This document shows positions 4,420 to 36,570 of a stretch of 64,000 bases of DNA, piece by piece. The notes beneath the pieces were generated by a model that worked only from the letters and a program-made list of their open reading frames with translations, ran no database searches and had not been told where the DNA came from. Each line of letters begins with the position of its first letter. Within the stretch, counting starts at the first letter, position 1. The DNA is taken from sequence record MN988522.1; one strand, written 5' to 3'. Both the position numbers and the translations under genes were made by a program.

Positions 4420-4447
4420 AGCGAAGAGGAGGGTGCATAGCCTTCCT
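4420..4447 (+). promoter_or_regulatory. conserved motif AGCGAA-N13-AGCCTTCCT, copy 1
   Basis: agcgaa gaggagggtgcat agccttcct, 9 nt before tRNA-Ser; also folds as a hairpin. Confidence 0.7.
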
Positions 4448-4456
4448 CTCTTGTCA

Positions 4457-4546
4457 GGAGAGGTGGCCGAGTGGTTGAAGGCACCTGACTACTAATCAGG
4501 CATACGAGCAATCGTATCGTGGGTTCGAAACCCACCCTCTCCGCCA
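4457..4546 (+). tRNA. tRNA-Ser(ACU), type II, unusual A34
   Basis: Stem CCTGA/TCAGG, loop CT-ACT-AA, long variable arm, G73, encoded CCA. Confidence 0.85.
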
Positions 4547-4568
4547 ATTATTAAGAATTGACTTACAT

Positions 4569-4991
4569 ATGTCTATTAGTTTGTATAACTACAAGATCAA
4601 CGTCATTCGAGTTATCGATGGCGATACGATTTATGCAGAAATTGATCTAGGATTCAATATTCGCATCAAAGATTACATTCGATTTGATGGAGTTGATACT
4701 CCTGAGACTCGAGGATCGACAGCTACTGATTTAGGTCAGTGGGCTAAGATGTATACTAGTCTTTGGCTCAGAGGTCTTGAGGGACAATTTGATGAGTTGA
4801 AGACTCTGAATCTGGATGAGGCTTGGTCTAAAGTACCTCGTTCGGATACAGGTCCATGGCTTACTAATCTTTATCTGGATAGTAAATCATACAATGACCG
4901 TGAGAAATACGGTAGGATCCTCGGATATATCTATCGTAATGAAGCTCTATCTTTGAATACCAGACTGATTCAAGAAGGTCTCAAGAAGTAG
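4569..4991 (+). CDS. thermonuclease/SNase-like nuclease
   Basis: VIRVIDGDT, IRFDGVDTPE, DKYGR-like EKYGRILG motifs. Confidence 0.85.
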   Translation: MSISLYNYKINVIRVIDGDTIYAEIDLGFNIRIKDYIRFDGVDTPETRGSTATDLGQWAKMYTSLWLRGLEGQFDELKTLNLDEAWSKVPRSDTGPWLTNLYLDSKSYNDREKYGRILGYIYRNEALSLNTRLIQEGLKK

Positions 4992-5084
4992 GAGAATTCT
5001 AATGGGTGACGATTCTAGCATCATACTTTAACCTGTAGGTTCATACAGAAGAGGATCTCCTCTTTACCTACAGGTAAGGAGAGT

Positions 5085-5369
5085 ATGATGGATAAGTTCA
5101 ATAGAGCAGTACGTAGACATCATCGTAAACGTCTACGTGAAAATAGAAAGATTTACCATGGAGGACTCCAATGGGTGATCGATCGTGAGAAAGCTAAATC
5201 TTTCAGAGTAAATACTCCTACGCCATGTTCATGTCATATGTGTGGCAATCCTCGTAAGTTCTTTAAAGAACTCACAATTCAGGAGCGTAAATTCGCCTTA
5301 GATTACGCGAAGTCGAGCTCCATTAACCTTCCTTATTGTCAGGAGGAATTGTCCTCCGATGATTTCTGA
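5085..5369 (+). CDS. small basic phage protein with CSCxxCGNPR Zn-binding-like motif
   Basis: PCSCHMCGNPRK motif; RBS AAGGAGAG. Confidence 0.7.
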   Translation: MMDKFNRAVRRHHRKRLRENRKIYHGGLQWVIDREKAKSFRVNTPTPCSCHMCGNPRKFFKELTIQERKFALDYAKSSSINLPYCQEELSSDDF

Positions 5370-5397
5370 ACCACTGAAAACTTATTCGGTTGGATTC

Positions 5398-5425
5398 AGC
5401 GAAGTCAGGGTTGGTTAGCCTTCCT
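5398..5425 (+). promoter_or_regulatory. conserved motif copy 2
   Basis: agcgaa gtcagggttggtt agccttcct upstream of tRNA-Lys. Confidence 0.7.
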
Positions 5426-5500
5426 TGTTACGAGGTCGAGGTTTTCGATCTTGAAGAATTCGATTTTTAGAGTACAAGTTTATAAAGAATCTCGTAATAT

Positions 5501-5577
5501 GTACGCTTAACTCAGCTGGATAGAGTAGCGACCTTTTAAGTCGTTGGTCATCGGTTCAAGTCCGATAGCGTACACCA
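5501..5577 (+). tRNA. tRNA-Lys(UUU)
   Basis: Acceptor GTACGCT/AGCGTAC, loop CT-TTT-AA, CCA. Confidence 0.95.
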
Positions 5578-5704
5578 TATTGCATACATTAGAAGACATA
5601 GTTTTTAGAGTAAATTTTGAGTGGTGTGCCTGTACCTATGGTACAGAGTGCTCGGAGATCCTCAGGTAGTTGGCGACTTGAGGATCTCTGCTACACTTTA
5701 TGAC

Positions 5705-5782
5705 GGTCCTGTACGTTCAATTGGATAGACGGCTGGATTTCTACTCCGGAGGTTGGGTGTTCGAGTCACTCCAGGATCGCCA
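5705..5782 (+). tRNA. tRNA-Arg(UCU)
   Basis: Acceptor GGTCCTG/CAGGATC, loop TT-TCT-AC, CCA. Confidence 0.9.
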
Positions 5783-5800
5783 TAAATTGTAGGTTATATT

Positions 5801-6439
5801 ATGGAATGCCCTTATTGTTCTAAGCTCTTTAAGAGTGAGAGATCAATGTCTGGACATAAGGGATTCTGTAAATCAGGACCCTATCGTGCAGATACGATTG
5901 ATCGTAATGCAAAAGCTAAGTTTAAATTAAGAAAAGTCAGACAACCTAGAGGTGTCGACAAGAGGACTCTTCCTGCGTCTTGTAAATTCTGTGACCGAGA
6001 ATTTGAAAATCTATTTCAGAAGAATGGTCATCAAGTTAGATGTGAGAAGAATCCTAATCCAGCTGAATCGTCAGGTCCAATAGGATATAAACACACTGAA
6101 AGTACTCGAAAGAAGCTCTCTGACGCTCGAAGAGCCTTCCTTATTGAGAACCCAGATAAGCAATTCTTCAATTATCGTGATTCTAAAGCAGAGCACGATC
6201 TTGCTAAGAAATTTGATGAAGTAGGTATCCTCTACGTAAGACAGTATCGAGGATCTGACTGGAAGAGAGCTTACAAGGCAGACTTCTATCTTCCAGAGTT
6301 TAATTACATCATTGAAGTTAATGGTGAGTTCAAGTATGAGAACGGTAAGCTGCATCAGTATTACCTAAACCGACAGAGATATATTGAATCATTTGGATAT
6401 AAAGTGATTCAAGTACACGCGTATGAAGTGTACGAGTAG
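5801..6439 (+). CDS. putative homing endonuclease (Zn fingers + NUMOD3-like + DUF559/Vsr-like nuclease)
   Basis: CPYC..H..C and CKFC..H..C fingers; HTESTRKKLS; ADFYLPEFNYIIEVNGEF. Confidence 0.75.
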   Translation: MECPYCSKLFKSERSMSGHKGFCKSGPYRADTIDRNAKAKFKLRKVRQPRGVDKRTLPASCKFCDREFENLFQKNGHQVRCEKNPNPAESSGPIGYKHTESTRKKLSDARRAFLIENPDKQFFNYRDSKAEHDLAKKFDEVGILYVRQYRGSDWKRAYKADFYLPEFNYIIEVNGEFKYENGKLHQYYLNRQRYIESFGYKVIQVHAYEVYE

Positions 6440-6876
6440 TTAAAGTACATCTTGGACATAGCTAGTGAGTTGGTTCTTCGTGAGTCATATCGTTTCTCCT
6501 TTCGGTATGAGTGTATGACAAGCTATGAGTTCTGGCATTCTATCTACCTTTAATCCTTTTCTGTAGATAGAATAACGCACGCGTCAAGATGTTATCCTCG
6601 AAAGTCAGACAGAGGATCTCAGTTTTATAATCTAGATAACGATATGCCCGATCGTTATGTTCCAGTAAGATCAAGTCTTCCTCCCAGACGTCACTCATTC
6701 CCCTCTTGAGTTTATCTTAACGCACGCGCTAGATTATAGGTCTCTGAAAACTGGACAGGAGACCATCAGTTCACTAGGGAGTCAGAAGTATGTAATTCCT
6801 TGTCTTACCTGGAGGTCACATGCGGGTGATCTCGGTTACTTTGAGGTTTACTACTTCTGACTCCTGCCGGATTTAT

Positions 6877-6952
6877 TCTAGGTTAGCCAAGTTGGTAAGG
6901 CACGAGTTTTTGGTGCTCGCATACCTAGGTTCGAACCCTAGACCTAGAACCA
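6877..6952 (+). tRNA. tRNA-Gln(UUG)
   Basis: Acceptor TCTAGGT/ACCTAGA, loop TT-TTG-GT, CCA. Confidence 0.92.
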
Positions 6953-6997
6953 CTTTTTAGATGTTGATTAAGTTCCGTCTAACAATGAGAGAATACA

Positions 6998-7255
6998 ATG
7001 AGTAAAGCATCTGAAGTTATCAAGAAGCTGAATGAGACTAAACCTTCAGAAGATCTTCTGAAGAGCGAGGTCCAGGAAATTAAGCAGAAGATGATTAATC
7101 AAGGCATCGTCAGACCTGACTATGCTGTTGAAAGATTTAGTCTGGTTAGTGATAGATTCAGAAATGTCTTGATACACGGTATTGTTCATGGAACAAATAC
7201 TGCAGGATGGAGAGATCAGATTAAAGATTTGAGATCTCAGAATTTGATTAGTTAG
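6998..7255 (+). CDS. hypothetical protein with MSKA...LNE N-terminal motif
   Basis: 85 aa ORF; stop codon overlaps G1 of tRNA-Gly. Confidence 0.7.
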   Translation: MSKASEVIKKLNETKPSEDLLKSEVQEIKQKMINQGIVRPDYAVERFSLVSDRFRNVLIHGIVHGTNTAGWRDQIKDLRSQNLIS

Positions 7256-7329
7256 CGGACGTAACTCAGAGGTAGAGTGCAATCCTTCCAAGTTTGAAGT
7301 CGTGGGTTCGATTCCCATCGTCCGCTCCA
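7255..7329 (+). tRNA. tRNA-Gly(UCC)
   Basis: Acceptor GCGGACG/CGTCCGC, loop CT-TCC-AA, U73, CCA. Confidence 0.93.
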
Positions 7330-7330
7330 T

Positions 7331-7407
7331 GCATCCTTAGCTCAGTTGGTTAGAGCATCAGTTTTACATACTGAGGGTCACTAGTTCGAGCCTAGTAGGA
7401 TGTACCA
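7331..7407 (+). tRNA. tRNA-Val(UAC)
   Basis: Acceptor GCATCCT/AGGATGT, loop TT-TAC-AT, CCA. Confidence 0.95.
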
Positions 7408-7426
7408 GTTATATTAAACTATTCGT

Positions 7427-7502
7427 GGGAGATTAGTTCAGTGGTTAGAACCGTCAGCTCATAACTGATTAAACAGAGGTTCGAATCCTCTATCTCCTAC
7501 CA
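7427..7502 (+). tRNA. tRNA(CAU), elongator Met or Ile2
   Basis: Acceptor GGGAGAT/ATCTCCT, loop CT-CAT-AA, CCA. Confidence 0.88.
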
Positions 7503-7505
7503 AGT

Positions 7506-7582
7506 ACCACCTTAACTCAGATGGATAGAGTACTCGACCGATAATCGAGTTGTCATTGGTTCAAGTCCAATAGGTGGTACCA
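7506..7582 (+). tRNA. tRNA-Ile(GAU), C at position 33
   Basis: Stem CTCGA/TCGAG, loop CC-GAT-AA, CCA. Confidence 0.88.
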
Positions 7583-7600
7583 ACTTTTATTGAGTAGATA

Positions 7601-8188
7601 ATGAAGTGCAGTTATTGTGAAACTGAGTTTAGACATCTGAGTCGACATGTTAGATATTGTCCTCAGAATCCTGACAGAATTGTCAAGTTAAATCAGTTCT
7701 CTAAGGCTGAGTCATTAGGCTTACCTAAGCCGCCATTGTCTGAGAAATCTCGGAGAATGACTACTGAAAGAAATGCATCTCGAGTATGGACTCCAGAGAT
7801 CAGATCTAAATTATCTAAGAGTATGATTAAGTACTTTAAAGATAATCCTGAAGCTCATCCGTACTTAAAGTATCATTCAAGTGGTGAATCATATGCTGAA
7901 GGATTCTTTCGAGAATTCTTTTTAAGTCATGATTTATCATTCAAACAAGAGTTGCAGGTTGGTCTCTATACACTTGACTTCGCATTTGAGGACAAGATGA
8001 TTGATGTAGAGATCAACGGTAACTTTCACTATAATAATCCTGGAATTGTTGAGAAAGATCAACGACGAAGACTCTTCTTGGAAGAGCGTGGATGGACTAT
8101 TATAGAAGTTCGATGGTCTGAGTATAAGAAGATGAATGAGTCAGAGCGATCTGATTATCTGAATTCCTTATTATCTCAACTATCCTGA
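7601..8188 (+). CDS. putative homing endonuclease (Zn finger + DUF559/Vsr-like nuclease)
   Basis: CSYC..H..C; LDFAFEDKMIDVEINGNFHY; GWTIIEVRW. Confidence 0.75.
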   Translation: MKCSYCETEFRHLSRHVRYCPQNPDRIVKLNQFSKAESLGLPKPPLSEKSRRMTTERNASRVWTPEIRSKLSKSMIKYFKDNPEAHPYLKYHSSGESYAEGFFREFFLSHDLSFKQELQVGLYTLDFAFEDKMIDVEINGNFHYNNPGIVEKDQRRRLFLEERGWTIIEVRWSEYKKMNESERSDYLNSLLSQLS

Positions 8189-8264
8189 CGCGGGATGGCG
8201 CAGTCGGTAGCGCGCAAGAGTCATAATCTTGAGGTCGAGGATTCGAGTTCCTCTCCCGCAACCA
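8189..8264 (+). tRNA. initiator-like tRNA-Met(CAU)
   Basis: C1:A72 mismatch (CGCGGGA/TCCCGCA), anticodon CAT, CCA; lacks the three G-C anticodon-stem pairs. Confidence 0.85.
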
Positions 8265-8525
8265 GTTTCAGTTAACGAGGCCACCGTATCTAGATTAATC
8301 TACCTCACAGGTATCTAGATCGTAGTGAGTTTGAGCGGAGCAGTCTTAACTGCATCGTTGTGGTCCCATCGATAATGCGGTCCCGAGATGGGATAGGACT
8401 CTATCTGAGTGCACAAGGATAGATGCACCTAAGCGGTCTCTGCGATGAGATCCACCGCTCCATAATCTGTAATCTTGATGTGAACAGTGTCGTAGATATC
8501 TCATCAGTAATATCGAGTTAATGAG

Positions 8526-9026
8526 ATGATGTATATCCGATACGCTTTATACTTACCAGTTAATCTACTACTTGTACTGTCAGCATATGTGTTCTCACCT
8601 ATTCTAGCAGCACTTTCTCTAATTACAGGTCCGACGCTCCCTGGAGTACTTCAATGGTTCTCTACTACGGATGACAATCTAGACGGTGGAATTCATCAGA
8701 ATGTCTCAGGCTATAAGTCTGGACTGAAAGGATTCTCACTATGGTGGCAACGTACATGTTGGATCTGCAGAAATCCTGCTCATGGATGGCAGTCTAACTT
8801 ACTAGGTATGTCTGTTGATGGATTCGAATTTATCGAGAAGATCGATATTTCTACTCCTAAATGGTATCTGATGAAGAATAATAAGCATACGTTCTTCATG
8901 TGGAAGAAGGATCAACCACTCTTCTCCAAGTATTATCTGAAACTATGGTTCGGATGGCTGAATACTGCATATGATGGTAAGAATCATCATTATGAATTTC
9001 AGATCGGACTGAAGAGTAAAAATTAA
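8526..9026 (+). CDS. phage membrane-anchored hypothetical protein
   Basis: N-terminal hydrophobic segment; WFSTTDDNLDG...W..RNPA motif. Confidence 0.7.
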   Translation: MMYIRYALYLPVNLLLVLSAYVFSPILAALSLITGPTLPGVLQWFSTTDDNLDGGIHQNVSGYKSGLKGFSLWWQRTCWICRNPAHGWQSNLLGMSVDGFEFIEKIDISTPKWYLMKNNKHTFFMWKKDQPLFSKYYLKLWFGWLNTAYDGKNHHYEFQIGLKSKN

Positions 9027-9036
9027 TATAGGTTAA

Positions 9037-9114
9037 GTCGCTATGACGGAGTGGTCCAACGTAATGGTCTGCAAAACCATATAACCGCTGGTTCGAATCC
9101 AGCTAGCGACTCCA
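9037..9114 (+). tRNA. tRNA-Cys(GCA)
   Basis: Acceptor GTCGCTA/TAGCGAC, loop CT-GCA-AA, U73, CCA. Confidence 0.93.
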
Positions 9115-9124
9115 AGGTTAAACT

Positions 9125-9235
9125 ATGAAGTATGTAATCATTCTAGCACTTCTTCTAGCAGGATGTCAATCTGCTGAAGAGCGTTACTATTCAGATTTGT
9201 CTACAGGTGTAGGCATGGTTCTAAAGGATAAATAA
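9125..9235 (+). CDS. small putative lipoprotein (36 aa, not in ORF track)
   Basis: MKYVIILALLLAGCQS: signal peptide with lipobox LAGC; upstream AAGGT. Confidence 0.6.
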   Translation: MKYVIILALLLAGCQSAEERYYSDLSTGVGMVLKDK

Positions 9236-9352
9236 ATGTCAACTATTATTGTTGCAGTTGTAGCATTCATTGCAGGTGGATACGCTAGTAAGAATTTTGG
9301 ATTCGATCTAGTTGAGTATGCCAAGGCTGCTTATAACAAGTTTAAGGCATAA
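9236..9352 (+). CDS. small membrane peptide (38 aa, not in ORF track)
   Basis: [18 protein letters not shown]..., abuts previous stop. Confidence 0.5.
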
Positions 9353-9361
9353 TGCCTTTGT

Positions 9362-9438
9362 CGGAGCGTAGCGCAGCCAGGTAGCGCAATAGTTTTGGGT
9401 ACTATGGGTCGTCTGTTCGAATCAGACCGTTCCGACCA
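9362..9438 (+). tRNA. tRNA-Pro(UGG)
   Basis: Acceptor CGGAGCG/CGTTCCG, loop TT-TGG-GT, CCA. Confidence 0.95.
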
Positions 9439-9440
9439 AT

Positions 9441-9517
9441 ATTCCCTTGGACAAGCGGTTTAAGTCATCTCACTTTCACTGAGAAGATCACGGGTTCAAA
9501 TCCCGTAGGGAATACCA
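9441..9517 (+). tRNA. tRNA-Glu(UUC)
   Basis: Acceptor ATTCCCT/AGGGAAT, loop CT-TTC-AC, CCA. Confidence 0.93.
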
Positions 9518-9522
9518 ATTTC

Positions 9523-9550
9523 AGCGAAGTTAGGCTCTTGTAGCCTTCCT
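9523..9550 (+). promoter_or_regulatory. conserved motif copy 3
   Basis: agcgaa gttaggctcttgt agccttcct. Confidence 0.7.
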
Positions 9551-9615
9551 TCTTGTATCGGTTAGTAGTGTCAATCCGAGCTATTAATGTGAGTATTAAG
9601 TATCGGATTCTATGA

Positions 9616-9712
9616 TCGAGAGTGGTGGAACGGTAGACACATCCAGATAAAAGAGCAGTTTCTGGACGCTACTTAAATATGCGTGCTAGTTCAAGTCTAG
9701 CCTCTCGAACCA
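9616..9712 (+). tRNA. Leu-type (class II) tRNA-like gene with aberrant 13-nt anticodon loop
   Basis: Acceptor TCGAGAG/CTCTCGA, A73, CCA, Leu-type D arm, T arm; TCCAGA/TCTGGA stem closes TAAAAGAGCAGTT. Confidence 0.75.
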
Positions 9713-9746
9713 ATATTATATGCTCATTCTTAGATAGGGATTACCA

Positions 9747-10508
9747 ATGGGTAAATTACATGAAATCCTCGCGGTTGAAGGTGACCTCGTAGGTGTAGCC
9801 AAGAAAGTTACTGAAGAAGCTATCGCTACGTTCAGCAAGCGTGCAGATCACTTCAGTGAGACTACTACTGAACAGAAATACTTTGCAGACGATGAGCAGC
9901 ATCTCAATACGTCTGAATCTAAGGCAATGGTGACCACTGTACCTGACAAGCTCAAGTACATCGTTGATCCTATTGCTAAGTTCTTCGATGCGTACTATTC
10001 GAAGGAAGCTACCAATCAGATCGCTAAGGCTGACGTAGAAGTCAAGGGTACAACGATCTTTGCAGATGTTCCAGCAACGGTTCTCCTAGGTATGGAGACT
10101 AAGCTTCGTGAACTCCGTAAGGTCTATGAATCGATTCCGACTCTCGCTCCTGGTGTATTCTGGGAGAAGGATGTTAATCGTCCGGCAGGTGTATACCGTG
10201 CTCGTGAACCTGAAGTCCGATTCGTTACGAAGAAGACTGTACGTCCGATCACTCTTTCACCTGCTACTGACAAGCATCCTGCTCAGATTGAGAAGGTCAA
10301 TGAAGATCTTCCTGTCGCTAAGAAGACGATTACTACCTGGAGTAGTATGATGTCGTCAGCTGACAAGAGCAAGGTCCTCGAACGTATCGATACTCTGATC
10401 CGTGCAGTTAAGACTGCTCGTCAGCGTGCAAACGGTACTGAGGCAGTATCTGCTTCATCCTTCGGTGATAAGATTTTCGACTTTATCCATCAAGGTATCG
10501 TCGACTAA
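9747..10508 (+). CDS. conserved uncharacterised protein (KLxxxLAVE / ATDKHPAQ family)
   Basis: 253 aa; motifs MGKLHEILAVE, VPATVLLGME, ATDKHPAQIE, AVKTARQRAN recalled from an uncharacterised family. Confidence 0.75.
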   Translation: MGKLHEILAVEGDLVGVAKKVTEEAIATFSKRADHFSETTTEQKYFADDEQHLNTSESKAMVTTVPDKLKYIVDPIAKFFDAYYSKEATNQIAKADVEVKGTTIFADVPATVLLGMETKLRELRKVYESIPTLAPGVFWEKDVNRPAGVYRAREPEVRFVTKKTVRPITLSPATDKHPAQIEKVNEDLPVAKKTITTWSSMMSSADKSKVLERIDTLIRAVKTARQRANGTEAVSASSFGDKIFDFIHQGIVD

Positions 10509-10691
10509 GAATTGAATGTTGAGGCTACCAGCATAGCCTCCATTCTCCGACTCCCATAGGGACAAACTCAGCCTTAAACTTATTGTGAGTATCAAGAATT
10601 TATCTTCTGCTCAAGATAAACAAACTAGCTTTGTATCCCTAAAACTTAGACAAGATTTACCAGATCTAGTCGTAGCATATCTCTATTTTCC

Positions 10692-10777
10692 CGGAAGGTC
10701 GTGAGTTCGAGTCTCATCACCGCACCCAATTACCTACAATTGGACTGATGCGGTGTAGCTCAGTGGTAGAGCGTTCG
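10692..10777 (+). ncRNA. circularly permuted tRNA-like domain within a ~420 nt non-coding region
   Basis: T arm GTGAG-TTCGAGT-CTCAT, then CACCGCA-C-CCA...TGCGGTG acceptor-like stem, then D arm TA-GCTC-AGTGGTA-GAGC. Confidence 0.8.
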
Positions 10778-10962
10778 TTTTATCTTGAAGATATCCTATC
10801 GATGATGACTGTATGAATCTATCGTAACGATTAAATATGCTCCGCGATAGGAGTGTATGTTACATTAACAAGAACAGGGTGGTTCCATGCGGAATGTGGT
10901 TCCACCCACCTCTTCTTATATAAGATCATTCGGATTTTATATAATAAGAATTTGAGGTTTAC

Positions 10963-11250
10963 ATGAGTAAGGCATCAAGATTACTTAGCAAGATCAATGA
11001 ATTGGACGGTGGATCTAAGGACCCACTGGTTCAATCAGGTTGTGCTAAGATTGTAGCTTATTGTCAGAAGAAGAGTCTTAGTGCTACTGAGATTGAGCAG
11101 ATTAAGGATCAGATTCTTGACGACGAGCCTCTTCACAATCATACTGCAGATACACTAGCTGCAATCGGTCTTGATATGAATATCAAGTCTGAGCTTGTAG
11201 CGATTGGTCTCAGTAGTGATGAAGCTGATGCGATTATGAATGTAACCTAA
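10963..11250 (+). CDS. hypothetical protein with MSKA...INE N-terminal motif
   Basis: 95 aa, RBS GAGGT. Confidence 0.75.
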   Translation: MSKASRLLSKINELDGGSKDPLVQSGCAKIVAYCQKKSLSATEIEQIKDQILDDEPLHNHTADTLAAIGLDMNIKSELVAIGLSSDEADAIMNVT

Positions 11251-11257
11251 CAGACAT

Positions 11258-11331
11258 GCTCCTATAGTTAAGTGGTATAACTCCTGTTTTGTAATCAGGG
11301 TTCCTCAGTTCGATTCTGGGTGGGAGCACCA
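11258..11331 (+). tRNA. tRNA-Thr(UGU)
   Basis: Acceptor GCTCCTA/TGGGAGC, loop TT-TGT-AA, CCA. Confidence 0.92.
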
Positions 11332-11383
11332 TGATTTCTTGAATCCTAACTCATAGTGAGTTAGAGATAACAAGGAAGATAAA

Positions 11384-11680
11384 ATGAGTGATGAAGTTAA
11401 TAAGACTGTCGTAACTAGAGAAGAACATCGAGGTACTGCTTGTAAGTACTATGATACTCGTGGTAAAGCATACGATGCTATTATCACTGAAGTATGGGGA
11501 CCTCAATGCGTCAACCTTGTCTATGTCAATGATGTAGAAGGTCAGAAAGATTCTTATGGTCAGAAATTGATCAGATCATGTTCTGTGATGCATGGTAGTG
11601 TTCAGCAAGCTCATGGCAACTATTGGATGTTACCAGGAGAGACTCGAGTTTCTAAATATGTTCATGATTCAGCTATTTAA
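11384..11680 (+). CDS. hypothetical protein
   Basis: 98 aa, RBS AAGGA. Confidence 0.7.
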   Translation: MSDEVNKTVVTREEHRGTACKYYDTRGKAYDAIITEVWGPQCVNLVYVNDVEGQKDSYGQKLIRSCSVMHGSVQQAHGNYWMLPGETRVSKYVHDSAI

Positions 11681-11745
11681 TTAACTTCTGTGATCTTCCG
11701 ACCTTGACGCGACGAAGTAGCAGATAACTTATAAACTTTCTTGTT

Positions 11746-12333: not shown

Positions 12334-12398
12334 TGATAACGGGAGCACGATGCCTTTGCACGGCATAGGACAGGGTTCGATTCCCTGCTAGTCCACCA
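12324..12398 (+). tRNA. tRNA-Ala(UGC)
   Basis: G3.U70 pair, loop TT-TGC-AC, CCA; first 10 nt overlap the GIY-YIG gene. Confidence 0.92.
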
Positions 12399-12450
12399 CA
12401 TTAGGTCGTATCAACCTGAGGTTAACCGTAGTTACTCAAACTGATACAAT

Positions 12451-12537
12451 GGGATTTCAGACGTGTTGGAGTGCGATCGGCAGACTGTAAATCTGTCCTC
12501 TTAGAGCTACTAGGTTCGAATCCTAGAAGTCCCACCA
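12451..12537 (+). tRNA. tRNA-Tyr(GUA)
   Basis: Stem GCAGA/TCTGT, loop CT-GTA-AA, variable arm, CCA; atypical D arm. Confidence 0.85.
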
Positions 12538-12542
12538 TATTT

Positions 12543-12584
12543 ATAGCCTCATATCGGAGCAATCTGGTATGAGGCTATTTCTTT
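12543..12584 (+). terminator. intrinsic terminator
   Basis: ATAGCCTCATA...TATGAGGCTAT hairpin followed by TTCTTT. Confidence 0.75.
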
Positions 12585-12658
12585 CATGTTAAAGAGAGGG
12601 GCGATGTATTATGATCGTTACGACATCTTCTAGGTAAAACAACCTAGGAGTATAAAGC

Positions 12659-13139: not shown

Positions 13140-13157
13140 TTCTAGATGGATAAGTTA

Positions 13158-13340: not shown

Positions 13341-13368
13341 AGCGAACTTAGCGTCTGATAGCCTTCCT
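13341..13368 (+). promoter_or_regulatory. conserved motif copy 4
   Basis: agcgaa cttagcgtctgat agccttcct, 17 nt before tRNA-Asn. Confidence 0.7.
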
Positions 13369-18470: not shown

Positions 18471-18520
18471 AGCCTAGTTAATATTGATTCTTCGAATTAG
18501 TATTAACTAGGCTTTCTTTT
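18471..18520 (+). terminator. strong intrinsic terminator ending the RNA island
   Basis: 20-bp stem AGCCTAGTTAATATTGATTC/GAATTAGTATTAACTAGGCT then TTCTTTTT. Confidence 0.8.
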
Positions 18521-18590
18521 TGTCCGATAGGTTCAGTTACGCATTATAAGGGATTCTTTCTTGAAGAAGGTTCCCTCTTGGAGAAGTTAG

Positions 18591-20489
18591 ATGCTAGAAT
18601 TTGCAGGTAAGTATGAAGATCTGAAGGGTATCGTACCCTCGTCTGTTCATACGATTGAGGATCTGGAGAATCAGGTCATCGCATGGGCTAAGGCCTATTA
18701 CGAGAAAGAATCAGAGTTGATTTCTGATGAAGAATTCAATCTCGTTACAGAATATATTGCAGAATTCTATCCTAATAGTCTCGTCTTGAAGACTGGATGG
18801 GGCTATAGACCTGAAGCTACCGACCATCTTCAGGAGTATCCTCACAAGATTCACGCTGGATCTCTTGCTAAGATCAAGTATGCGGACGTTAAGTCTGGTA
18901 ATACGACTTATGATCCTCTATTACGATTCTCTTTGATGCCTAAGGGTGATGGAGGTAGTGTCGTTGCATACTACCACGAAGGCCTCCTGGAAAGAGCTTT
19001 GTCTCGAGGAGATGGAAATGTAGGTCTCGACATCACGAAGAATCTGGTAGCATCTGGATCTCTTCCTACCAAGATCGAGAACAAGAATATCGAATGGGTA
19101 CGAGCAGAGTTGATGCTTACCTGGACTGACTATGAAGCTATCGGAGGTAAGCATCCTCGTAACAAGGCAGTAGGACTTAGTCAGTCTGAGAATGCTGATC
19201 CTGAAGAACTAGCATGCTTGAAGTTCGTAGCTTATCAGTCTAATCTAGACTTCGACTTCGGTATGGAATTGACTCTTCTCAGGAATCTTGGATTCACAAC
19301 TGTCAATCATGTCGAGATGAACTGGTCTGAATTCCTTCAGAAGATTGACGATCAAGTATTCCTAAAGTTATTGAATGAAGATTATCCAACGGATGGTCTT
19401 GTCCTTCGATTCAGTGACGATGCTGCAATCGCATTCAAGTTTCCTGATGAACGAGTTAAGACTAAGATCAAAGACATTGAATGGAATCTGTCGAGAACTG
19501 GTCGTATGGTTCCTAAGGCAATCCTGGAACCTGTCAATCTAGCAGGAGCTACGATTTCCAGAGCGACCTTGAACAACTATGAGTACTTGACTGAACTAGG
19601 ATGCGGTCCAGGATCTGAAGTTGAGATCATTCGATCTAATCTGATTATCCCTAAGATTGTGAAGGTTCTGAATAAGGAACCTGCGAGACGACCACTTGTA
19701 TGCAATAGATGCTATGAGGTATTGGAGGTCGTAAAGACTGATTTGATGTGCGTCAATGAAATGTGCGCATGTCGAGTTATGTCGTCAGTCAATCGTCTCT
19801 TTTCATTGACGAAACCTGACGGTATCGGTGGTAGTGCTTGTACGACTCTCGTTAATGGTCTTGCAATCGATAGTTGGGAGACTGCTAAGTCAAGACTCAT
19901 AGATCAAGACGTAACTGGTTTGGATAAGATCTTCGGTACAAAGACTGAGACTAAGATTCAGGAAATGATCTCGAAGATCAAGAGTCTGAATCAGATAATC
20001 ACTGTCAAAGGTGTACTTTATCTCGCGAATATTCCTAAGCTTGGTAATTCGAGTACAGGACCTATCGCTGAGAATGTCTCAGTGGATGAATTCTTGACTG
20101 CTATTCGTGAAGATGAGATTCCTGTTTCATGGAAGCAGTACTGTGCATCTGAACCTGCATTCAACAATCTTCGTAAGTCGATTCAACGAATTCGACTGAT
20201 ATTAGACTTCCTTAATTGGAAGGTCAATGCTGTAGTGAAAGTTGAGAAAGTAGAAACTCGTCTGAAGTACTGCATGACAGGAACATTTAGTAAGAAGAGA
20301 TCTGAGCTACAAACTGAGTTCTCTAAGTTAGGTCTTGAATTCGTCGATGTCAAGAAAGCTCAAGTCTTGATGTGGGATGGAGAAGATCAGAAGAATAAGT
20401 ATCATACTGCCAAGAAGCTCGGGATTGAGATTATCTCCGAGAAGGAATTCAGAAGTCGATATGTCCAATCAGAAGAAGCCATCGTATAA
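18591..20489 (+). CDS. ligA: NAD-dependent DNA ligase
   Basis: KxDG (PKGDG), LSRGDGNVG, TDGLV, AFKF, SRTGRMVP, RATLNN, C4 Zn finger, BRCT-like C-terminus. Confidence 0.93.
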   Translation: MLEFAGKYEDLKGIVPSSVHTIEDLENQVIAWAKAYYEKESELISDEEFNLVTEYIAEFYPNSLVLKTGWGYRPEATDHLQEYPHKIHAGSLAKIKYADVKSGNTTYDPLLRFSLMPKGDGGSVVAYYHEGLLERALSRGDGNVGLDITKNLVASGSLPTKIENKNIEWVRAELMLTWTDYEAIGGKHPRNKAVGLSQSENADPEELACLKFVAYQSNLDFDFGMELTLLRNLGFTTVNHVEMNWSEFLQKIDDQVFLKLLNEDYPTDGLVLRFSDDAAIAFKFPDERVKTKIKDIEWNLSRTGRMVPKAILEPVNLAGATISRATLNNYEYLTELGCGPGSEVEIIRSNLIIPKIVKVLNKEPARRPLVCNRCYEVLEVVKTDLMCVNEMCACRVMSSVNRLFSLTKPDGIGGSACTTLVNGLAIDSWETAKSRLIDQDVTGLDKIFGTKTETKIQEMISKIKSLNQIITVKGVLYLANIPKLGNSSTGPIAENVSVDEFLTAIREDEIPVSWKQYCASEPAFNNLRKSIQRIRLILDFLNWKVNAVVKVEKVETRLKYCMTGTFSKKRSELQTEFSKLGLEFVDVKKAQVLMWDGEDQKNKYHTAKKLGIEIISEKEFRSRYVQSEEAIV

Positions 20490-24935: not shown

Positions 24936-24963
24936 AGCGAATCTGACGTCTAAAAGCCTTCCT
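24936..24963 (+). promoter_or_regulatory. conserved motif copy 5
   Basis: agcgaa tctgacgtctaaa agccttcct, upstream of the HD and DNA polymerase genes. Confidence 0.7.
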
Positions 24964-30071: not shown

Positions 30072-30166
30072 AGGCGCTTACTTGTTGGGTAAATGGGTGC
30101 AGTTAGGCTCTTGGAGGGATTCTTATTCGGTGAGCCCTCCAAGGCTTCCAGAAAGAGGGTAATGTA

Positions 30167-31071: not shown

Positions 31072-34000
31072 ATGCAACTTTCTCTGAAGCCAGTCTCTCC
31101 AGAATCTGTACTCTTGACTTCACAAGGAGAGGTCAAGTCGTATGAGACTCTGAACTTCAAGACAGGTCTACCTGTTCGAGACGGTCTCTTGTGCCAGAAG
31201 GTATTCGGACCGATTAGAGACTACGTATGTGAATGCGGCAAGTACGATGGTAAGAAATACCAGGGACATACTTGTGAGAAGTGCGGTGTTACGGTAGCGA
31301 GTTCACGTGCTCGTACTGTGAGAATGGGTCATATTGATCTTCAAGTTCCCATTCTTAATCCGTTGATGATCGAGTCGATCGAATCGATTATAGGTCTCCC
31401 ATCCAGAAAGATGGAGGACTTTATGAAGAACAAGATCTGCCTGAAATTTTCAGCATCTGGTACAGGTAATCTTGTTCGTAAGGACGGTACACGAGGTATC
31501 GCGTATTTTGTAGATCCTAAGGAATCTGATCCTCGATCTCCTACTCTGCAGCATACGAAGTCGTCTCTGGTTCTTTATGAACTCTTGACGGATCTCGATA
31601 TTGAAGAGACGCTCAAAGTCAATGGATCCAAGATCCTGAAGACCTATGTGCAGAAGAACTTCCCTCTTTCTAATCTCTTCATTCGTTATCTACCGGTATC
31701 TCCAGCAGGATACCGTCCAGTCACTCGTATGAGAAACTACTATTCTCAGCATCCCAAGAATGACCTTTATCAGAAGATCATTCGACGTACTCTGCGAGTG
31801 AAGGAACTGGTTAATATCAATGCAGACTCAATGATTCTTCAGGAAGAGGCAGGCATTCTGTATAAGTCTGTCGATCAACTCTTCACTGGAGGAGCTCGAG
31901 ATGGCGATGGGAACCCTCTTCCTGGAACCATTGAGAAGATGATGGGTAAGAGAGGTATTCTCCGAGGAAATCTTCTCGGTAAGCGTACCGACTACTCTGG
32001 ACGTTCAGTTATCACTTCAGCAGGTGATCGTGTAGAAGTGGACCAGATTGGTCTACCTCGTAAGATGGCATACATCTTGTTTCGTCCTTTCATTCTCCGT
32101 TATCTGATGACGGAGTATCTGGATCATTATACTGAAGCACTGAAGCACTACGAGAAGAAGACTGTTATCGCACTGAAGTCTCTCGAGATGGTAGCTAAGG
32201 ATTATCCGATCATCATGAATCGTGCTCCTACGCTTCATAGATACGGTGTAATGTCTTTCCGTACCAAGTTGGTAAATGGTAAGGCTATCCTCGTTCATCC
32301 GATTGTATGTTCTCCATTCAATGCAGACTTCGACGGAGATACTGTAGCTATCCACTTGCCTCTTTCAGCTAAGTCTGTTCAGGAGTGCAAAGATTATCTC
32401 ATGCCTCAGAACAATCTCCTGTCTTCACTTGATGGTGATCCGATCATCAATATGTCGCACGAGATGGTTATCGGTCTTGCTATCATGTCTCGTATTAAGG
32501 ATCATGATAAGGGATTCGGTACATTCCGACGTATGGATGAGCTCGAGTATCTTCATACTGTCACCAATCCTCAGACTAGCCGTCCTACACTTGAGATCTA
32601 CGATAGAATCAAGTGGAAAGATGAACGAGGAGTGACAGAGACGTGCTATGGTCGACTTCTTCTCGAGCAGACATTCAAGACCAAGAATCTTCCGAAGGAC
32701 TTCTCTAAGAAGACTATTCGTCGGATGATCAGTGATGCGTACGACAAGCTTGGACCTGATGAACTGATTAAGGTACTGGATGTAGCTACTCAGCTTTCAT
32801 TCAAGTATGCTACGAACTCTGGTTTCTCAGTTTCGATTGATGATTGTAAGGTACCTTCTACGAAACCTGCTAAGATTGCGAAAGCTAGAGAGCAGGAAGC
32901 TGAGAATTATCGTCAATTCGATAACAATGAAATCAATCTTGCAGAGCGTCGAGAGAACAATATTCGTCTCTGGAACGATGTCTTTGAAGATCTTCATCAC
33001 GATTGGATGAAAGAAGCAGGTGAGGACAATCCGGTAGTTCTTATGTATACTACTGGTGCTCGTGTTAGTAAGTCTCAGGTCAATCAGATCGGAGTCGCTA
33101 AGGGTCTTGTATCCAATGCACTCAATCAGATCATCGAGAAGCCTATGGTTAACTCCTTCCGTGAAGGATTGTCGACGTTTGAGTACTTTGCATCTTGCTC
33201 TGGATCTCGTAAGTCCATGGCAGACAAGAAGAATCTGACTCCCAAGTCTGGTTATCTTACACGTCGAATGATTACTGCTAGCCGAGATTTCTTCATTAAT
33301 TCAGATGATTGTGGTACCGATAAGGGTATCATGCGTACGATGAAGTCCTCGTATGGACGTTATCGTTGCGACAATGGTGAGATGATTGGTACGAACAATA
33401 GTGAAGAACTCGTTAAGGTTCGTAGTCCGATTCATTGTGAGTCGCATGGTGGTATCTGCGTTAAGTGCTACGGTATTGATCCTGCTAAGCGTAAGATCGT
33501 CACGAAGGGGTCCAACGTAGGAGCTATTGCAGCTCACTCGTTGACTGAATCTACAACTCAGATGACGATGCGTACCTTCCATACATCTGGTGCAGTCGTT
33601 CTGAAGGATAGTCCGATGGTCATTACTGCCCAGAAGGATGGTAAGATCAGCTGGGATACTCTTCATCCTGTCTACAGCAAGATTCATGTTGTTGCAGATA
33701 TGGAAGATTGGGATACACCTCTCAATGATCGATTGACGTATACAGTTCATAACAAGATGTCTCGCATTCTTGTTAAGGATGGTCAGTCTGTCAAGAAGGG
33801 TGATCCTCTAGCGATCTACGTTGATGAAGATCTTGAGAGCGACGACGTCAGTGGATCGCTCCCTAAGATTGAATCTCTGTATGAAGGTCGAGTACCTCCG
33901 AAAGCGTACAAGTCAGTTATCTCGAAGGTAGCTGGTAAGATTGGTATTAACATCGGAGATGAAGGTCTTAAGATCTTCGTTGATGGTGAATACCAAGGTA

Positions 34001-34455
34001 CTGCTCATCCTAAGACTCCGGTATTCGTTGCTCAAGGTCAGTATGTTGAAGCTGGTCAGACTCTCTCGTTTGGTTCTCCAGACGTAGTAGGTTTGTTCAA
34101 GGAGACAAAGGATCTTGATCTCGCTTACAAGGTCTTTGAGAAGACTCTGATGGATATCTACAATAAGGAAGGTCTCCAGCCAGTACCAACTCATTCGGAG
34201 ATGATCTTCAGAGCGATGTCTAATCTGGTATACACCGAGAGTGGTCCTTATGGTCTTCGATCCCATGGAGACAAGGGTAGCATTATGCTGAAGGGTATTA
34301 CTCAGATTGGTGCGAATCATCCGTCCTGGTTGAAGTCAATCGGATTCGGATGGGTAGCTCAGACGATCAGAACTTCTGCTGTGAATCTTGCTACCACGTA
34401 CGATCTTCCTACCGAACGTCTGATGTCTGGTGAATTGATTTACGAGGATAAATAA
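31072..34455 (+). CDS. rpoC: multisubunit RNA polymerase beta' subunit
   Basis: CECGKY..CEKC Zn site, RMGHI, GKRTDYSGR, NRAPTLHR, catalytic NADFDGD, SGYLTRR, TQMTMRTFH. Confidence 0.95.
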   Translation: MQLSLKPVSPESVLLTSQGEVKSYETLNFKTGLPVRDGLLCQKVFGPIRDYVCECGKYDGKKYQGHTCEKCGVTVASSRARTVRMGHIDLQVPILNPLMIESIESIIGLPSRKMEDFMKNKICLKFSASGTGNLVRKDGTRGIAYFVDPKESDPRSPTLQHTKSSLVLYELLTDLDIEETLKVNGSKILKTYVQKNFPLSNLFIRYLPVSPAGYRPVTRMRNYYSQHPKNDLYQKIIRRTLRVKELVNINADSMILQEEAGILYKSVDQLFTGGARDGDGNPLPGTIEKMMGKRGILRGNLLGKRTDYSGRSVITSAGDRVEVDQIGLPRKMAYILFRPFILRYLMTEYLDHYTEALKHYEKKTVIALKSLEMVAKDYPIIMNRAPTLHRYGVMSFRTKLVNGKAILVHPIVCSPFNADFDGDTVAIHLPLSAKSVQECKDYLMPQNNLLSSLDGDPIINMSHEMVIGLAIMSRIKDHDKGFGTFRRMDELEYLHTVTNPQTSRPTLEIYDRIKWKDERGVTETCYGRLLLEQTFKTKNLPKDFSKKTIRRMISDAYDKLGPDELIKVLDVATQLSFKYATNSGFSVSIDDCKVPSTKPAKIAKAREQEAENYRQFDNNEINLAERRENNIRLWNDVFEDLHHDWMKEAGEDNPVVLMYTTGARVSKSQVNQIGVAKGLVSNALNQIIEKPMVNSFREGLSTFEYFASCSGSRKSMADKKNLTPKSGYLTRRMITASRDFFINSDDCGTDKGIMRTMKSSYGRYRCDNGEMIGTNNSEELVKVRSPIHCESHGGICVKCYGIDPAKRKIVTKGSNVGAIAAHSLTESTTQMTMRTFHTSGAVVLKDSPMVITAQKDGKISWDTLHPVYSKIHVVADMEDWDTPLNDRLTYTVHNKMSRILVKDGQSVKKGDPLAIYVDEDLESDDVSGSLPKIESLYEGRVPPKAYKSVISKVAGKIGINIGDEGLKIFVDGEYQGTAHPKTPVFVAQGQYVEAGQTLSFGSPDVVGLFKETKDLDLAYKVFEKTLMDIYNKEGLQPVPTHSEMIFRAMSNLVYTESGPYGLRSHGDKGSIMLKGITQIGANHPSWLKSIGFGWVAQTIRTSAVNLATTYDLPTERLMSGELIYEDK

Positions 34456-34458
34456 AGG

Positions 34459-34656
34459 ATGCAAGACCTATCTCAACTATGTGAAGTTGAGATGGAGAAG
34501 TTAGTTGAAATACTAATGAGATCGACTCACTTGACACTCGACGGTGTTGAGCTGAGTCGATCTCATGAATATCATAATAGCCCATCTGTCTCTACAATTA
34601 AAACTCATAAAGTCCTTGATGACTCATACATTACAGTTAGACTGAAATATGTATAA
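34459..34656 (+). CDS. hypothetical protein
   Basis: 65 aa. Confidence 0.5.
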   Translation: MQDLSQLCEVEMEKLVEILMRSTHLTLDGVELSRSHEYHNSPSVSTIKTHKVLDDSYITVRLKYV

Positions 34657-35362
34657 CTTGCAATACGATGATGGAATTCTTAAATCAAATAGGGAGTCTC
34701 TCGTAAACATACGAGCTCCATTCTTCAAACGGATTGATCGACGATCTCGCAAGTCGTCCATCGAGAGATTAATGATCTCACCTGATACAACAAGAAATTG
34801 TAGTCAGATTAAGAGATTTCTCGTTCCGTTCAACGATAAGTACTTGTACAGCATGCATGTGACTTATCGTGACGACTTAAAGTGTCAATCTATTTATGAC
34901 ACTAACAAGTCTCTCAAGCGAATCCTCCGATCTAAAATGTTAATGTCAGCTGTGAACAGGATAAATGAGTATCCTCAACTCAAAGCAGACATATTGTCTG
35001 TAATCAAGCTTGTAGTTAATTCTTGGGAGTTTGATGGTCTTATCACAGACATTGAATGGCTCCAGGATGAAAATCTACTGGATACTGTGATATCTAAGTG
35101 GAAACTGAAGAAGTACGAATCCTCTACAGAGCGAGGGTCAGTGATCAATCTCTTAATAAAGAGTTTTGATGGAGTTCCACTTAATCTTCTATCTCATCTA
35201 GAGATGAAGAAAATCAGTATTGAGGATACTGACATTGAGGACGTTAAGTTTAAATGTCCTCTGATATTAATGCGATCGAATTCATCTTGTGCAGGATTCA
35301 TATCTAAGTCCTTGGATAAAGGACTACCTGTGAGTCTGTTCAAGATTGATATAAAAGAGTAA
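34649..35362 (+). CDS. hypothetical protein
   Basis: 237 aa, last + strand gene before convergence. Confidence 0.7.
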   Translation: MYNLQYDDGILKSNRESLVNIRAPFFKRIDRRSRKSSIERLMISPDTTRNCSQIKRFLVPFNDKYLYSMHVTYRDDLKCQSIYDTNKSLKRILRSKMLMSAVNRINEYPQLKADILSVIKLVVNSWEFDGLITDIEWLQDENLLDTVISKWKLKKYESSTERGSVINLLIKSFDGVPLNLLSHLEMKKISIEDTDIEDVKFKCPLILMRSNSSCAGFISKSLDKGLPVSLFKIDIKE

Positions 35363-35419
35363 AAATAAAGGCCACTAGGCGGGACCCTTCTCGGAGGATT
35401 CACCTAGTGGCCTATTTTT
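35361..35419. terminator. bidirectional terminator at strand switch
   Basis: AAAAAT-AA-AGGCCACTAGG...CCTAGTGGCCT-ATTTTT between convergent genes. Confidence 0.85.
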
Positions 35420-35424
35420 GTGTC

Positions 35425-35679
35425 TTATGGAAGAAGTGGTACGAAACTCTTCAGCTTATTGTACACATCATCCTGCTTACCCATTTCAGTCGAATACTTA
35501 TCAAGAATCGTCTGATTATCTGGGAATTCATTACCTTGATTAGCTACCCAGTCGACATAATCATGCCAATCCTGGTCATCGTGAAGATCACGATGCTGCT
35601 TAATCAGATTTGCATATTCAGCATCTGTGAATTCATGCAATGATGAAAGCTTCTCAAGAATGTCTTTAGCTCTACTCAT
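35425..35679 (-). CDS. hypothetical protein with MSRA...LHE motif
   Basis: Likely start MSRAK at 35679 (track start 35694). Confidence 0.7.
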   Translation of the reverse strand: MSRAKDILEKLSSLHEFTDAEYANLIKQHRDLHDDQDWHDYVDWVANQGNEFPDNQTILDKYSTEMGKQDDVYNKLKSFVPLLP

Positions 35680-35690
35680 ATTAATCTCCG

Positions 35691-36146
35691 TCAAGCTACT
35701 ACAGCGAGTTCATTACTTGGTACTTCATGAACGTCACCATCGACTTCGATCATGCAGATTTCACCGTTCACTTTAAGAACAGTGCCTGTACCGTGAACTG
35801 ATTCAACAGTGTTATTAAGAAGGATCTCACGACCATTCTTATCTTCGCATTCGATGAATGCTCTCTGACCATTGTCAGGAGTGTAATCAGGAGCTTTACC
35901 TGTTACGCCATCTGCATTCACATTGTTCCAGTGACCGTATGCGTCAAAGTATAGTACGTCGAGATCCGAACTATCTTGGAACTTGTCACGTTCAGCCATA
36001 GCATCCTTGAAAGGCATTGCTAGAGGACCTAGGATAACTTTATTGTTGGTACGATTAACAATGTACGTACCAATGCGTTTACTGGTATCTTCGTCGATAC
36101 CTGTGATCTTTGACAGATCACTAATCAGACCTGATGCTCTGCTCAT
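35691..36146 (-). CDS. hypothetical protein with MSRA...IDE motif
   Basis: 151 aa, RBS AAGGA. Confidence 0.75.
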   Translation of the reverse strand: MSRASGLISDLSKITGIDEDTSKRIGTYIVNRTNNKVILGPLAMPFKDAMAERDKFQDSSDLDVLYFDAYGHWNNVNADGVTGKAPDYTPDNGQRAFIECEDKNGREILLNNTVESVHGTGTVLKVNGEICMIEVDGDVHEVPSNELAVVA

Positions 36147-36174
36147 ATTAAATATCCTTGTTAGCGTTTATGAC

Positions 36175-36474
36175 TTAGAGACCAGCAGCCTTGCGCTTTC
36201 TCATAGTCATTTGACGCTTACGAGAGATAGCAGCTTGCTGTCCTCTCTTCTTACGAGCACCCATCTTCGCAGCCTTACGCTTAGCGATGATCTCACCGGC
36301 ACTCATCTTGACGCAAGTCTTACCATCAATCTTGTAACCTGGAGGGCAATCAAGAATAACACTCTTGGCTCCACCTCTGAATGTTACTTTCTTCTTAGGA
36401 GCAGCTTCACTAGCTGGAATAGAAGACTCATAGTAAGCATCAATTTTAGTGATCAAATCTGCAGATTTAGACAT
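36175..36474 (-). CDS. basic protein, possibly prohead-core type
   Basis: MSKSADLI..YYE; CPPGYK..TCVK then K/R-rich tail resembling T4-like prohead core proteins. Confidence 0.5.
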   Translation of the reverse strand: MSKSADLITKIDAYYESSIPASEAAPKKKVTFRGGAKSVILDCPPGYKIDGKTCVKMSAGEIIAKRKAAKMGARKKRGQQAAISRKRQMTMRKRKAAGL

Positions 36475-36542
36475 AATGTACATCCATTTTAGTTTATTTA
36501 ATGAGGATTATCACTTTACACAATTATAAAGTGTGCACAAAG

Positions 36543-36570
36543 AGGAAGGCTTATGTCGCCTTCCTTCGCT
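36543..36570 (-). promoter_or_regulatory. conserved motif copy 6
   Basis: Reverse complement agcgaa ggaaggcgacata agccttcct, co-oriented with the downstream - strand genes. Confidence 0.7.

Follow-up and report, generated by a model that had tools for sequence, protein, structure and literature searches.

We describe a short bipartite sequence element of Rhizobium phage RHph_TM40 (accession MN988522.1; 207,431 bp) which is probably the core of a phage-specific class of promoters, of the middle or delayed-early type. The element, hereafter class 1, consists of a 5' box, AGCGAA, and a 3' box, AGCCTTCCT, separated by 13 nucleotides (nt), i.e. AGCGAA-N13-AGCCTTCCT. It is real, conserved, rigidly spaced, strand-specific and intergenic. 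The motif had been pointed out in a sequence-only reading of one stretch of 64,000 nt, here called the window, which is 100% identical to RHph_TM40 and starts at record position 124001 (window position 1). The phage is classified within the family Kleczkowskaviridae, which has the single genus Cuauhnahuacvirus. For the present analysis the whole MN988522.1 record was used together with its 383 annotated features, and the starts and stops of all coding sequences were validated. Genes on the plus strand form a block at record 0-159.4 kb, comprising small unknown open reading frames (ORFs), nucleotide metabolism and replication genes, 20 tRNAs and a gene for the RNA polymerase subunit beta'. Structural and lysis genes occupy a minus strand block running from record 206.7 down to 159.4 kb. 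Positions given below refer to the window unless marked as record positions.

Six exact class-1 copies were present in the window, at the same coordinates and on the same strands as originally reported, and dinucleotide-preserving shuffles contained no matches. All six were located outside annotated features and had the orientation of the next gene or tRNA, so that the claim of intergenic, co-oriented copies is confirmed. When up to three mismatches were allowed, three further near-copies appeared (5306, 6114 and 20185), all of them on the plus strand. The copies are as follows:

4420..4447, plus strand: exact copy, beginning 2 nt past the stop of the coding sequence 2891-4417; its 3' box ends 9 nt 5' of tRNA-Ser (4457-4546).
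5306..5333, plus strand: near-copy CGCGAA-N13-AACCTTCCT, within the annotated small coding sequence 5088-5369 and 92 nt 5' of copy 5398.
5398..5425, plus strand: exact copy and top-scoring site, 75 nt 5' of tRNA-Lys (5501).
6114..6141, plus strand: doubtful copy with a perfect 3' box and a poor 5' box (AGCTCT), within a homing-endonuclease coding sequence.
9523..9550, plus strand: exact copy, 5 nt past tRNA-Glu and followed by 196 unannotated nt and a coding sequence from 9747.
13341..13368, plus strand: exact copy, the 3' box ending 17 nt 5' of tRNA-Asn (13386).
20185..20212, plus strand: near-copy AACGAA-N13-AGACTTCCT, in the 3' part of the ligase gene and 248 nt 5' of the primase gene.
24936..24963, plus strand: exact copy, 32 nt before the operon of 5'-deoxynucleotidase and of PolA fused to uracil-DNA glycosylase (UDG) (start 24996).
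36543..36570, minus strand: exact copy, ahead of the last three genes of the minus block (36474..35425); the next coding sequence is 36474..36175.

Over the entire 207 kb, ten exact copies were detected, those outside the window being at record 102831, 107860, 118323 and 207166. The 3' box alone occurred 28 times genome-wide (26 times on the plus and twice on the minus strand), compared to about 0.5 occurrences per strand expected from base composition. A refined weight matrix returned 33 class-1 sites scoring at least 12 bits, and none in shuffled genomes. Every one of these 33 sites was co-oriented with local genes, 32 being on the plus strand within the plus block and one on the minus strand within the minus block (P ~1e-10). 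At 24 of the 33, the 3' box was situated in unannotated DNA, which constitutes only 6.96% of the genome (binomial P=3e-21).

As the weight matrix fixes the N13 spacing by construction, the spacing was tested independently on the 28 copies of AGCCTTCCT. AGCGAA with at most one mismatch was found at N13 upstream of 16 of them, whereas none had it at any of the remaining spacings between 7 and 20. Position 3 of the 5' box was a C in 25 of the 28 cases. The extended class-1 consensus reads (G)ATT(C)-AGCGAA-nTnAG(G/C)GTnnnnn-AGCCTTCCT-TnTT(G)T. The flanking preferences noted before are genuine, with (G)ATT(C) upstream and T-n-T-T(G)T downstream.

The element also keeps a characteristic position with respect to its neighbours. 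The upstream gene typically ends no more than about 20 nt from the 5' box. At 12 sites the next start codon follows the 3' box after 26-33 nt, five of them having a gap of 29 nt. Class-1 sites are concentrated at record 40-140 kb, where they precede genes for thymidylate synthase, primase-helicase, exonuclease, gyrase, tRNAs and PolA. Two copies have an informative upstream context. The one at record 207166 is placed in a divergent region at the head of the plus block, with no plus strand gene upstream of it and about 300 nt upstream of a copy of a second element described below. This position counts in favour of a promoter. The other, at record 102831, begins 20 nt past the end of a strong terminator. 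Convincing upstream terminators were present at few sites, however (6 of 33 versus a background of 8%), and an upstream terminator was accordingly rejected as a general class-1 feature.

Conservation was examined first within the genus, using RHph_Y65, which is about 98% identical to RHph_TM40 and in which all 33 class-1 sites could be aligned. The boxes differed at 5 of 495 positions (1.0%), compared to 19 of 429 in the spacers (4.4%; Fisher P=0.0014) and 211 of 7145 in the 120-nt flanks (3.0%; P=0.007). Two of the five box differences go toward the consensus. At copy 24936, the spacer was changed at 8 of 13 bases while both boxes stayed intact. At copy 5306, both non-consensus bases of RHph_TM40 are replaced by the consensus in RHph_Y65 (AGCGAA ... 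AGCCTTCCT). The annotated ORF that holds this near-copy (5088-5369, 94 amino acids (aa), hypothetical) may be spurious, or may overlap a tandem promoter.

Farther away, relatives of the beta' protein were found on syntenic metagenomic contigs, with identities of 39-55%. In contig L024 (beta' identity 55%), GGCGAA-N13-AGCCTTCCT is present in the gap before the nucleotidase/PolA operon, orthologous to copy 24936, and AGCGAA-N13-AGCCTTCTA is present on the minus strand at the spot orthologous to window 36570. Contig L026 (53%) keeps the 3' box at the spots orthologous to both of these copies, and the 3' box is also found at the spot of L029 that corresponds to copy 24936. In L029 and L031 (41%), AGCCTTCCT precedes a large replication gene and the ligase gene, intergenic and co-oriented in both cases. 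The spacers and flanks at the orthologous metagenomic sites were unalignable with those of RHph_TM40. The class-1 motif was absent from contig L033 and from the more distant beta'-bearing phages, Vibrio phage Va2 and Escherichia phage IME392. A scan of IMG/VR for the exact motif gave single matches only, at about chance level, and a scan of the same database with the beta' protein gave no match.

Intergenic word enrichment revealed a second bipartite element, ATA-GGT(T/G)CA-(C/G)TTAnnGTnnnnn-A(A/G)GGATTCT-TCTTTGAAGG, in 16 copies, all on the plus strand. This element, class 2 (short form GGTTCA-N13-AGGGATTCT), has the layout of class 1: a 6-mer, a 13-nt spacer containing TTAG.GT, a 9-mer, and then TCTT(T)G. 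Twelve of the 16 copies are at record 0-60 kb, among small unknown ORFs. The class-2 boxes showed no differences from RHph_Y65 at 240 positions, whereas 111 differences were counted over 3741 flanking positions (P=0.002), and class-2-like elements were recognisable before the beta' operon in L024, L026, L031 and L032. In the whole-genome scan, neither class occurred in the structural block at 161-206 kb. Two class-2 copies, at record 58151 and 142530, follow terminators in the manner of the class-1 copy at record 102831. The class-2 features of the window are listed here together with the terminator next to one of them:

18471..18523, plus strand: intrinsic terminator with a 20-bp stem and a T-run, immediately 5' of class-2 element 18527.
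18527..18566, plus strand: class-2 element ATA-GGTTCA-N13-AGGGATTCT-TTCTTGAAG, directly after this strong terminator and before the ligase/primase/helicase operon.
30094..30123, plus strand: class-2 variant TG-GGTGCA-N13-AGGGATTCT, before the operon of a 218-aa ORF and beta'.

The motif had been proposed to serve a phage-encoded RNA polymerase (beta' gene at 31072) or a phage sigma-like factor. That gene is a genuine ORF:

31072..34455, plus strand: RNA polymerase beta' gene of the bacterial type, unsplit, with Rpb1 domains 1-5.

The protein shares 33% identity with E. coli RpoC across ~1010 residues (E=1e-142) and retains an intact NADFDGD catalytic loop, zinc-finger cysteines, bridge helix and trigger loop. 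The link from this subunit to the motif does not stand in the form proposed, as beta' was the only subunit detected. A tblastn search with E. coli RpoB found no beta subunit, be it in the 207-kb genome (best E=3.7) or on the contigs of the relatives, and there was none in the 19-22-kb regions around beta' of Va2 and IME392. Among 57 hypothetical plus strand ORFs of at least 125 aa, Pfam and NCBIfam detected no sigma factor, no beta and no T7-like or other single-subunit polymerase, and Pfam and PHROGs gave no match, sigma included, for the ORFs around beta'. No MotA-like or AsiA-like protein was seen among the scanned ORFs of at least 125 aa. Two ORFs (218 aa and ~237 aa) flank beta' in every relative. 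Their AlphaFold models are poor, with predicted local distance difference test (pLDDT) values of 59 and 44. With no beta and no recognisable sigma of its own, the phage has no self-sufficient RNA polymerase, and its beta', if involved, needs host subunits. It follows that rifampicin resistance of the transcripts is uninformative about the use of beta', since rifampicin targets beta, which would be that of the host.

Taken together, over-representation, co-orientation, placement, N13 spacing, the fixed distance to start codons and tRNAs, and conservation of boxes but not spacers all speak for the promoter part of the original claim, albeit indirectly. According to the model we favour, an RNA polymerase holoenzyme would recognise the class-1 motif in double-stranded DNA, with specificity coming from a phage-encoded factor. 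Contacts to the 5' box, in which the C at position 3 matters most, and to the 3' box would be 19 bp apart, start to start, in a manner similar to sigma-dependent -35 and -10 elements. The conserved T-n-T-T-G-T stretch would contain the transcription start, within a few nt of the 3' box, leaving leaders of ~20-25 nt for mRNAs and very short ones for tRNA-Ser and tRNA-Asn. Class 1 would drive replication, nucleotide-metabolism and tRNA genes, and class 2 the early region and the beta' operon. Because the beta' operon is preceded by class 2 and the replication and tRNA genes by class 1, the arrangement is compatible with a cascade in which, as we infer, class 1 depends on the products of class-2 transcription. 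The terminator upstream of record copy 102831, and the like placement of the class-2 copies at record 58151 and 142530, suggest a context of re-initiation.

As for the enzyme, replacement of host beta' by phage beta' in a hybrid polymerase is one possibility. We tentatively suggest, while considering it rather doubtful, that both classes are read by such a hybrid, built from phage beta' in a host core (beta, alpha and omega) and a phage specificity factor. The latter might be one of the two conserved ORFs flanking beta', and the subunit swap would retarget transcription to phage DNA, possibly DNA with modified thymidine. PolA (25667-28996) is a family-A DNA polymerase fused to an N-terminal UDG domain, an architecture that has been tied to phages with modified thymidine (PMC13697223, 2026). 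This fusion suggests that the DNA of RHph_TM40 may contain modified thymidine, and its promoters may be read on such DNA. Genes for dCMP deaminase (22398-22901), dUTPase and ThyX are also present in the genome.

Several observations weigh against the promoter model. Nine of the 33 matrix sites are within annotated genes. Most copies adjoin the end of an upstream gene with no terminator in between, so that read-through transcripts would carry the motif, and a role in RNA is possible. The tight 26-33-nt distance to start codons would equally suit a role linked to translation, although the closeness of class-1 copies to tRNAs (9 nt for tRNA-Ser, 17 nt for tRNA-Asn) argues against this. No recognition factor, be it a sigma, a MotA-like protein or a T7-like polymerase, was found among the scanned ORFs, and the 218-aa and 237-aa ORFs had no match in profile searches against PDB sequences or in Foldseek searches against PDB. 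Neither class resembles a host sigma70 promoter, so that neither accounts for the start of infection. Finally, initiation at class 1, its start site and the enzyme that reads it are only inferred.

The alternatives become progressively less likely in the order RNA processing, regulator site, host alternative sigma and terminator. An RNA-level motif would be recognised by its sequence in polycistronic transcripts, just 5' of each ribosome-binding site or tRNA, where for example a phage endoribonuclease or an RNA-binding regulator would process, cleave, bind or mark the message. Most copies would indeed be transcribed, since a gene without a terminator directly precedes them. Strand specificity is as expected for RNA as for a promoter, the start-codon distance is fixed, a few copies have good hairpins, and the 3' box, rich in pyrimidines (CCUUCCU), is similar to an anti-Shine-Dalgarno sequence. 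We nevertheless deem this explanation unlikely, since single-stranded RNA is not usually recognised through two rigidly placed boxes with a free spacer of 13 nt and no conserved structure, one copy heads the plus block with no plus strand gene upstream, at least one is 20 nt past a strong terminator, where read-through RNA would be scarce, and no Rfam family matches the motif. It is also improbable that class 1 is a DNA site other than a core promoter, whether bound by a phage regulator (as operator or activator site) or serving as a cassette for recombination or at module boundaries. Both boxes start with AGC, 19 bp apart, copies flank small variable ORFs and homing-endonuclease genes, and repeated regulatory cassettes at module boundaries occur in T4-type phages. 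However, the element is asymmetric and strictly oriented with transcription, it has a promoter-like distance to start codons and tRNAs, and no separate promoter-like element accompanies it.

The latter point touches on host promoters. In window 4000-20000, 39 sigma70-like matches were found versus 42.1 expected, and none of them coincided with a class-1 copy. The host sigma70 promoter was therefore rejected as a candidate, the boxes AGCGAA and AGCCTTCCT being dissimilar from its elements (hexamers like TTGACA and TATAAT with 16-18 bp between them), and the earlier statement that the motif is unlike sigma70 -35/-10 was upheld. Unmodified host RNA polymerase with an alternative host sigma, of the extracytoplasmic function (ECF) or heat-shock type, and with no phage specificity factor, is a poor candidate too. 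The layout is -35/-10-like, with a 16-bp spacer if the last six bases of the 3' box serve as -10. In some copies the sequence CGAACTT approaches the ECF -35 core GGAAC(TT), and a phage sigma was not found. On the other hand, the 3' box shows no similarity to the known downstream elements of ECF (CGT-type), RpoH or sigma54 promoters. Moreover, the two classes co-diverge with the phage lineage and are absent from distant beta'-bearing phages, suggesting specificity encoded by the phage. Least likely, and largely refuted, is the alternative raised by the sequence-only reading itself, an intrinsic terminator or attenuator hairpin. The remark that four copies (first, third, fourth and sixth) form hairpins is partly right: z-scores were below -2 at 4420, 9523 and 36570, and a 7-bp stem at 13341 extends past the motif. 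A pyrimidine/T-rich run follows the 3' box, and a terminator-like pattern scan picked 4420 and 9523. As a property of the class, though, hairpins failed. Only ~6 of the 33 copies had a stable one (z < -2), and mean fold z-scores of -0.8 (38 nt) and -1.1 (60 nt) compare to -0.7 for random genome windows. Complementarity between spacer and downstream sequence, conspicuous at some copies (e.g. CGTCTGA...TCAGACG at 13341), was marginal over a partner-permuted control (P ~0.02-0.03) in class 1 and absent in class 2. The two copies picked by the scan have 5-bp stems and weak tails, whereas genuine terminators of RHph_TM40 have 12-20-bp stems followed by T-runs, and the boxes are conserved as sequence, not as pairing. 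An RNA hairpin, terminator or antiterminator was thus rejected as a class feature. The terminator at the convergence of the two gene blocks is given here:

35363-35424: strong bidirectional terminator hairpin, GGCCACTAGG...CCTAGTGGCC, with A- and T-runs on either side.

Some further features of the genome were recorded. The word TAAGTAAT recurs at gene junctions, among others in the structural block, with seven of eight co-oriented copies at junctions and often overlapping the upstream stop codon. It might conceivably be a late-type promoter core, being reminiscent of T4 TATAAATA. Its copies include:

13685-13692, plus strand: TAAGTAAT.
38458-38465, minus strand: TAAGTAAT.
43718-43725, minus strand: TAAGTAAT.
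Record 67477, 113025 and 200510: TAAGTAAT.

The unannotated sequence after copy 9523 contains a stretch (9616-9711) that folds in a cloverleaf-like manner. Its acceptor stem measures 7 bp, with ACCA after it, the loop of the T-arm reads GTTCAAG, the variable arm is long, and the 'anticodon' loop has 13 nt. ARAGORN made no call there, Rfam gave no match, and the fold is statistically ordinary (z=-1.3). Homing-endonuclease genes (5801-6439 and 7601-8188) are scattered between the tRNA genes. In RHph_Y65, nothing corresponding to the gene at 7601-8188 is annotated in the interval from tRNA-Ile to tRNA-Met, so that this gene looks like a presence/absence polymorphism. Near a gene for a TROVE/Ro60-like protein (16226-17794), three sub-threshold matches to YrlA (Y RNA-like) and an additional tRNA-like match were found in otherwise unannotated stretches (10672-10811, 15295-15409, 15474-15548 and 15765-15829), which suggests a phage Ro60/Y-RNA module. 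Outside the window, a gene annotated as 'transcription termination factor Rho' (L002:35985-36731) has no Pfam or NCBIfam support, and a PurA-like adenylosuccinate synthetase gene is present at L002:10642-11892.

In the library of papers searched, we found none on promoters of Kleczkowskaviridae, on the literal motif or on an orphan phage beta'. Neither host promoters nor those known from phages resemble the class-1 signals, which occur in a genome with an intact-looking beta' and neither beta nor sigma. The motif provides a testable map of transcription units for little-studied 200-kb rhizobiophages and their metagenomic relatives, and a 40-bp element with defined boxes and spacing offers a handle on the function of the orphan beta'. 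If the hybrid polymerase were true, the beta' swap would represent a novel viral strategy for taking over a multisubunit polymerase of the cell. Without it, the outcome would still be a new promoter consensus with two related classes.

Of the known systems, promoters of the N4 virion RNA polymerase are similar in having inverted repeats, here around or within some copies. In N4, a hairpin with a 5-7-bp stem and a 3-nt loop is required at every copy, whereas hairpins in RHph_TM40 are sporadic and heterogeneous, and a gene for a giant virion polymerase is missing. ECF sigma promoters likewise have two short boxes with rigid spacing and are more G+C-rich than those of sigma70, and the 5' box extended by the bases that follow it can give CGAACTT, similar to the GGAAC core of ECF promoters. 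They differ in that the 3' box of class 1 lacks the CGT core, and the 57 ORFs and the neighbours of beta' gave no Sigma70_r2/r4 match. Like the jumbo phages phiKZ and AR9, RHph_TM40 has a genome of more than 200 kb, a homologue of a large RNA polymerase subunit and promoter candidates unlike those of the host. Promoters of jumbo-phage multisubunit polymerases are nevertheless single short elements, namely an AT-rich -10 block of ~10 nt, TATG at the start, or AACA-N6-TA (PMC7598289). Moreover, phiKZ and AR9 possess split sets of beta and beta', in contrast to the single unsplit beta', the missing beta and the bipartite, G+C-containing motif described here. Promoters of T7, T3 and SP6 are also conserved, strictly oriented elements of ~25-35 bp, present in many copies ahead of gene blocks. 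In both cases, versions in related phages are related yet distinct, and two classes are built on one framework. Theirs form one continuous block, however, and not two boxes with a free spacer, and a T7-like polymerase was not found here.

The closest geometry is that of T4 middle promoters. These combine a MotA box with a sigma70 -10 element, and the host RNA polymerase that uses them has been remodelled through MotA and AsiA. Their specificity thus comes from phage factors that act on the host enzyme, as it may here. RHph_TM40 differs from T4 in that the 3' box AGCCTTCCT is unlike a sigma70 -10, no MotA-like or AsiA-like protein was present among the ORFs of at least 125 aa, and the phage has its own beta'. 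In T4, the upstream box is 12-13 bp from the downstream element, compared to N13 in class 1, and in both phages many copies are arranged in co-directional arrays that serve replication, nucleotide-metabolism and tRNA genes.

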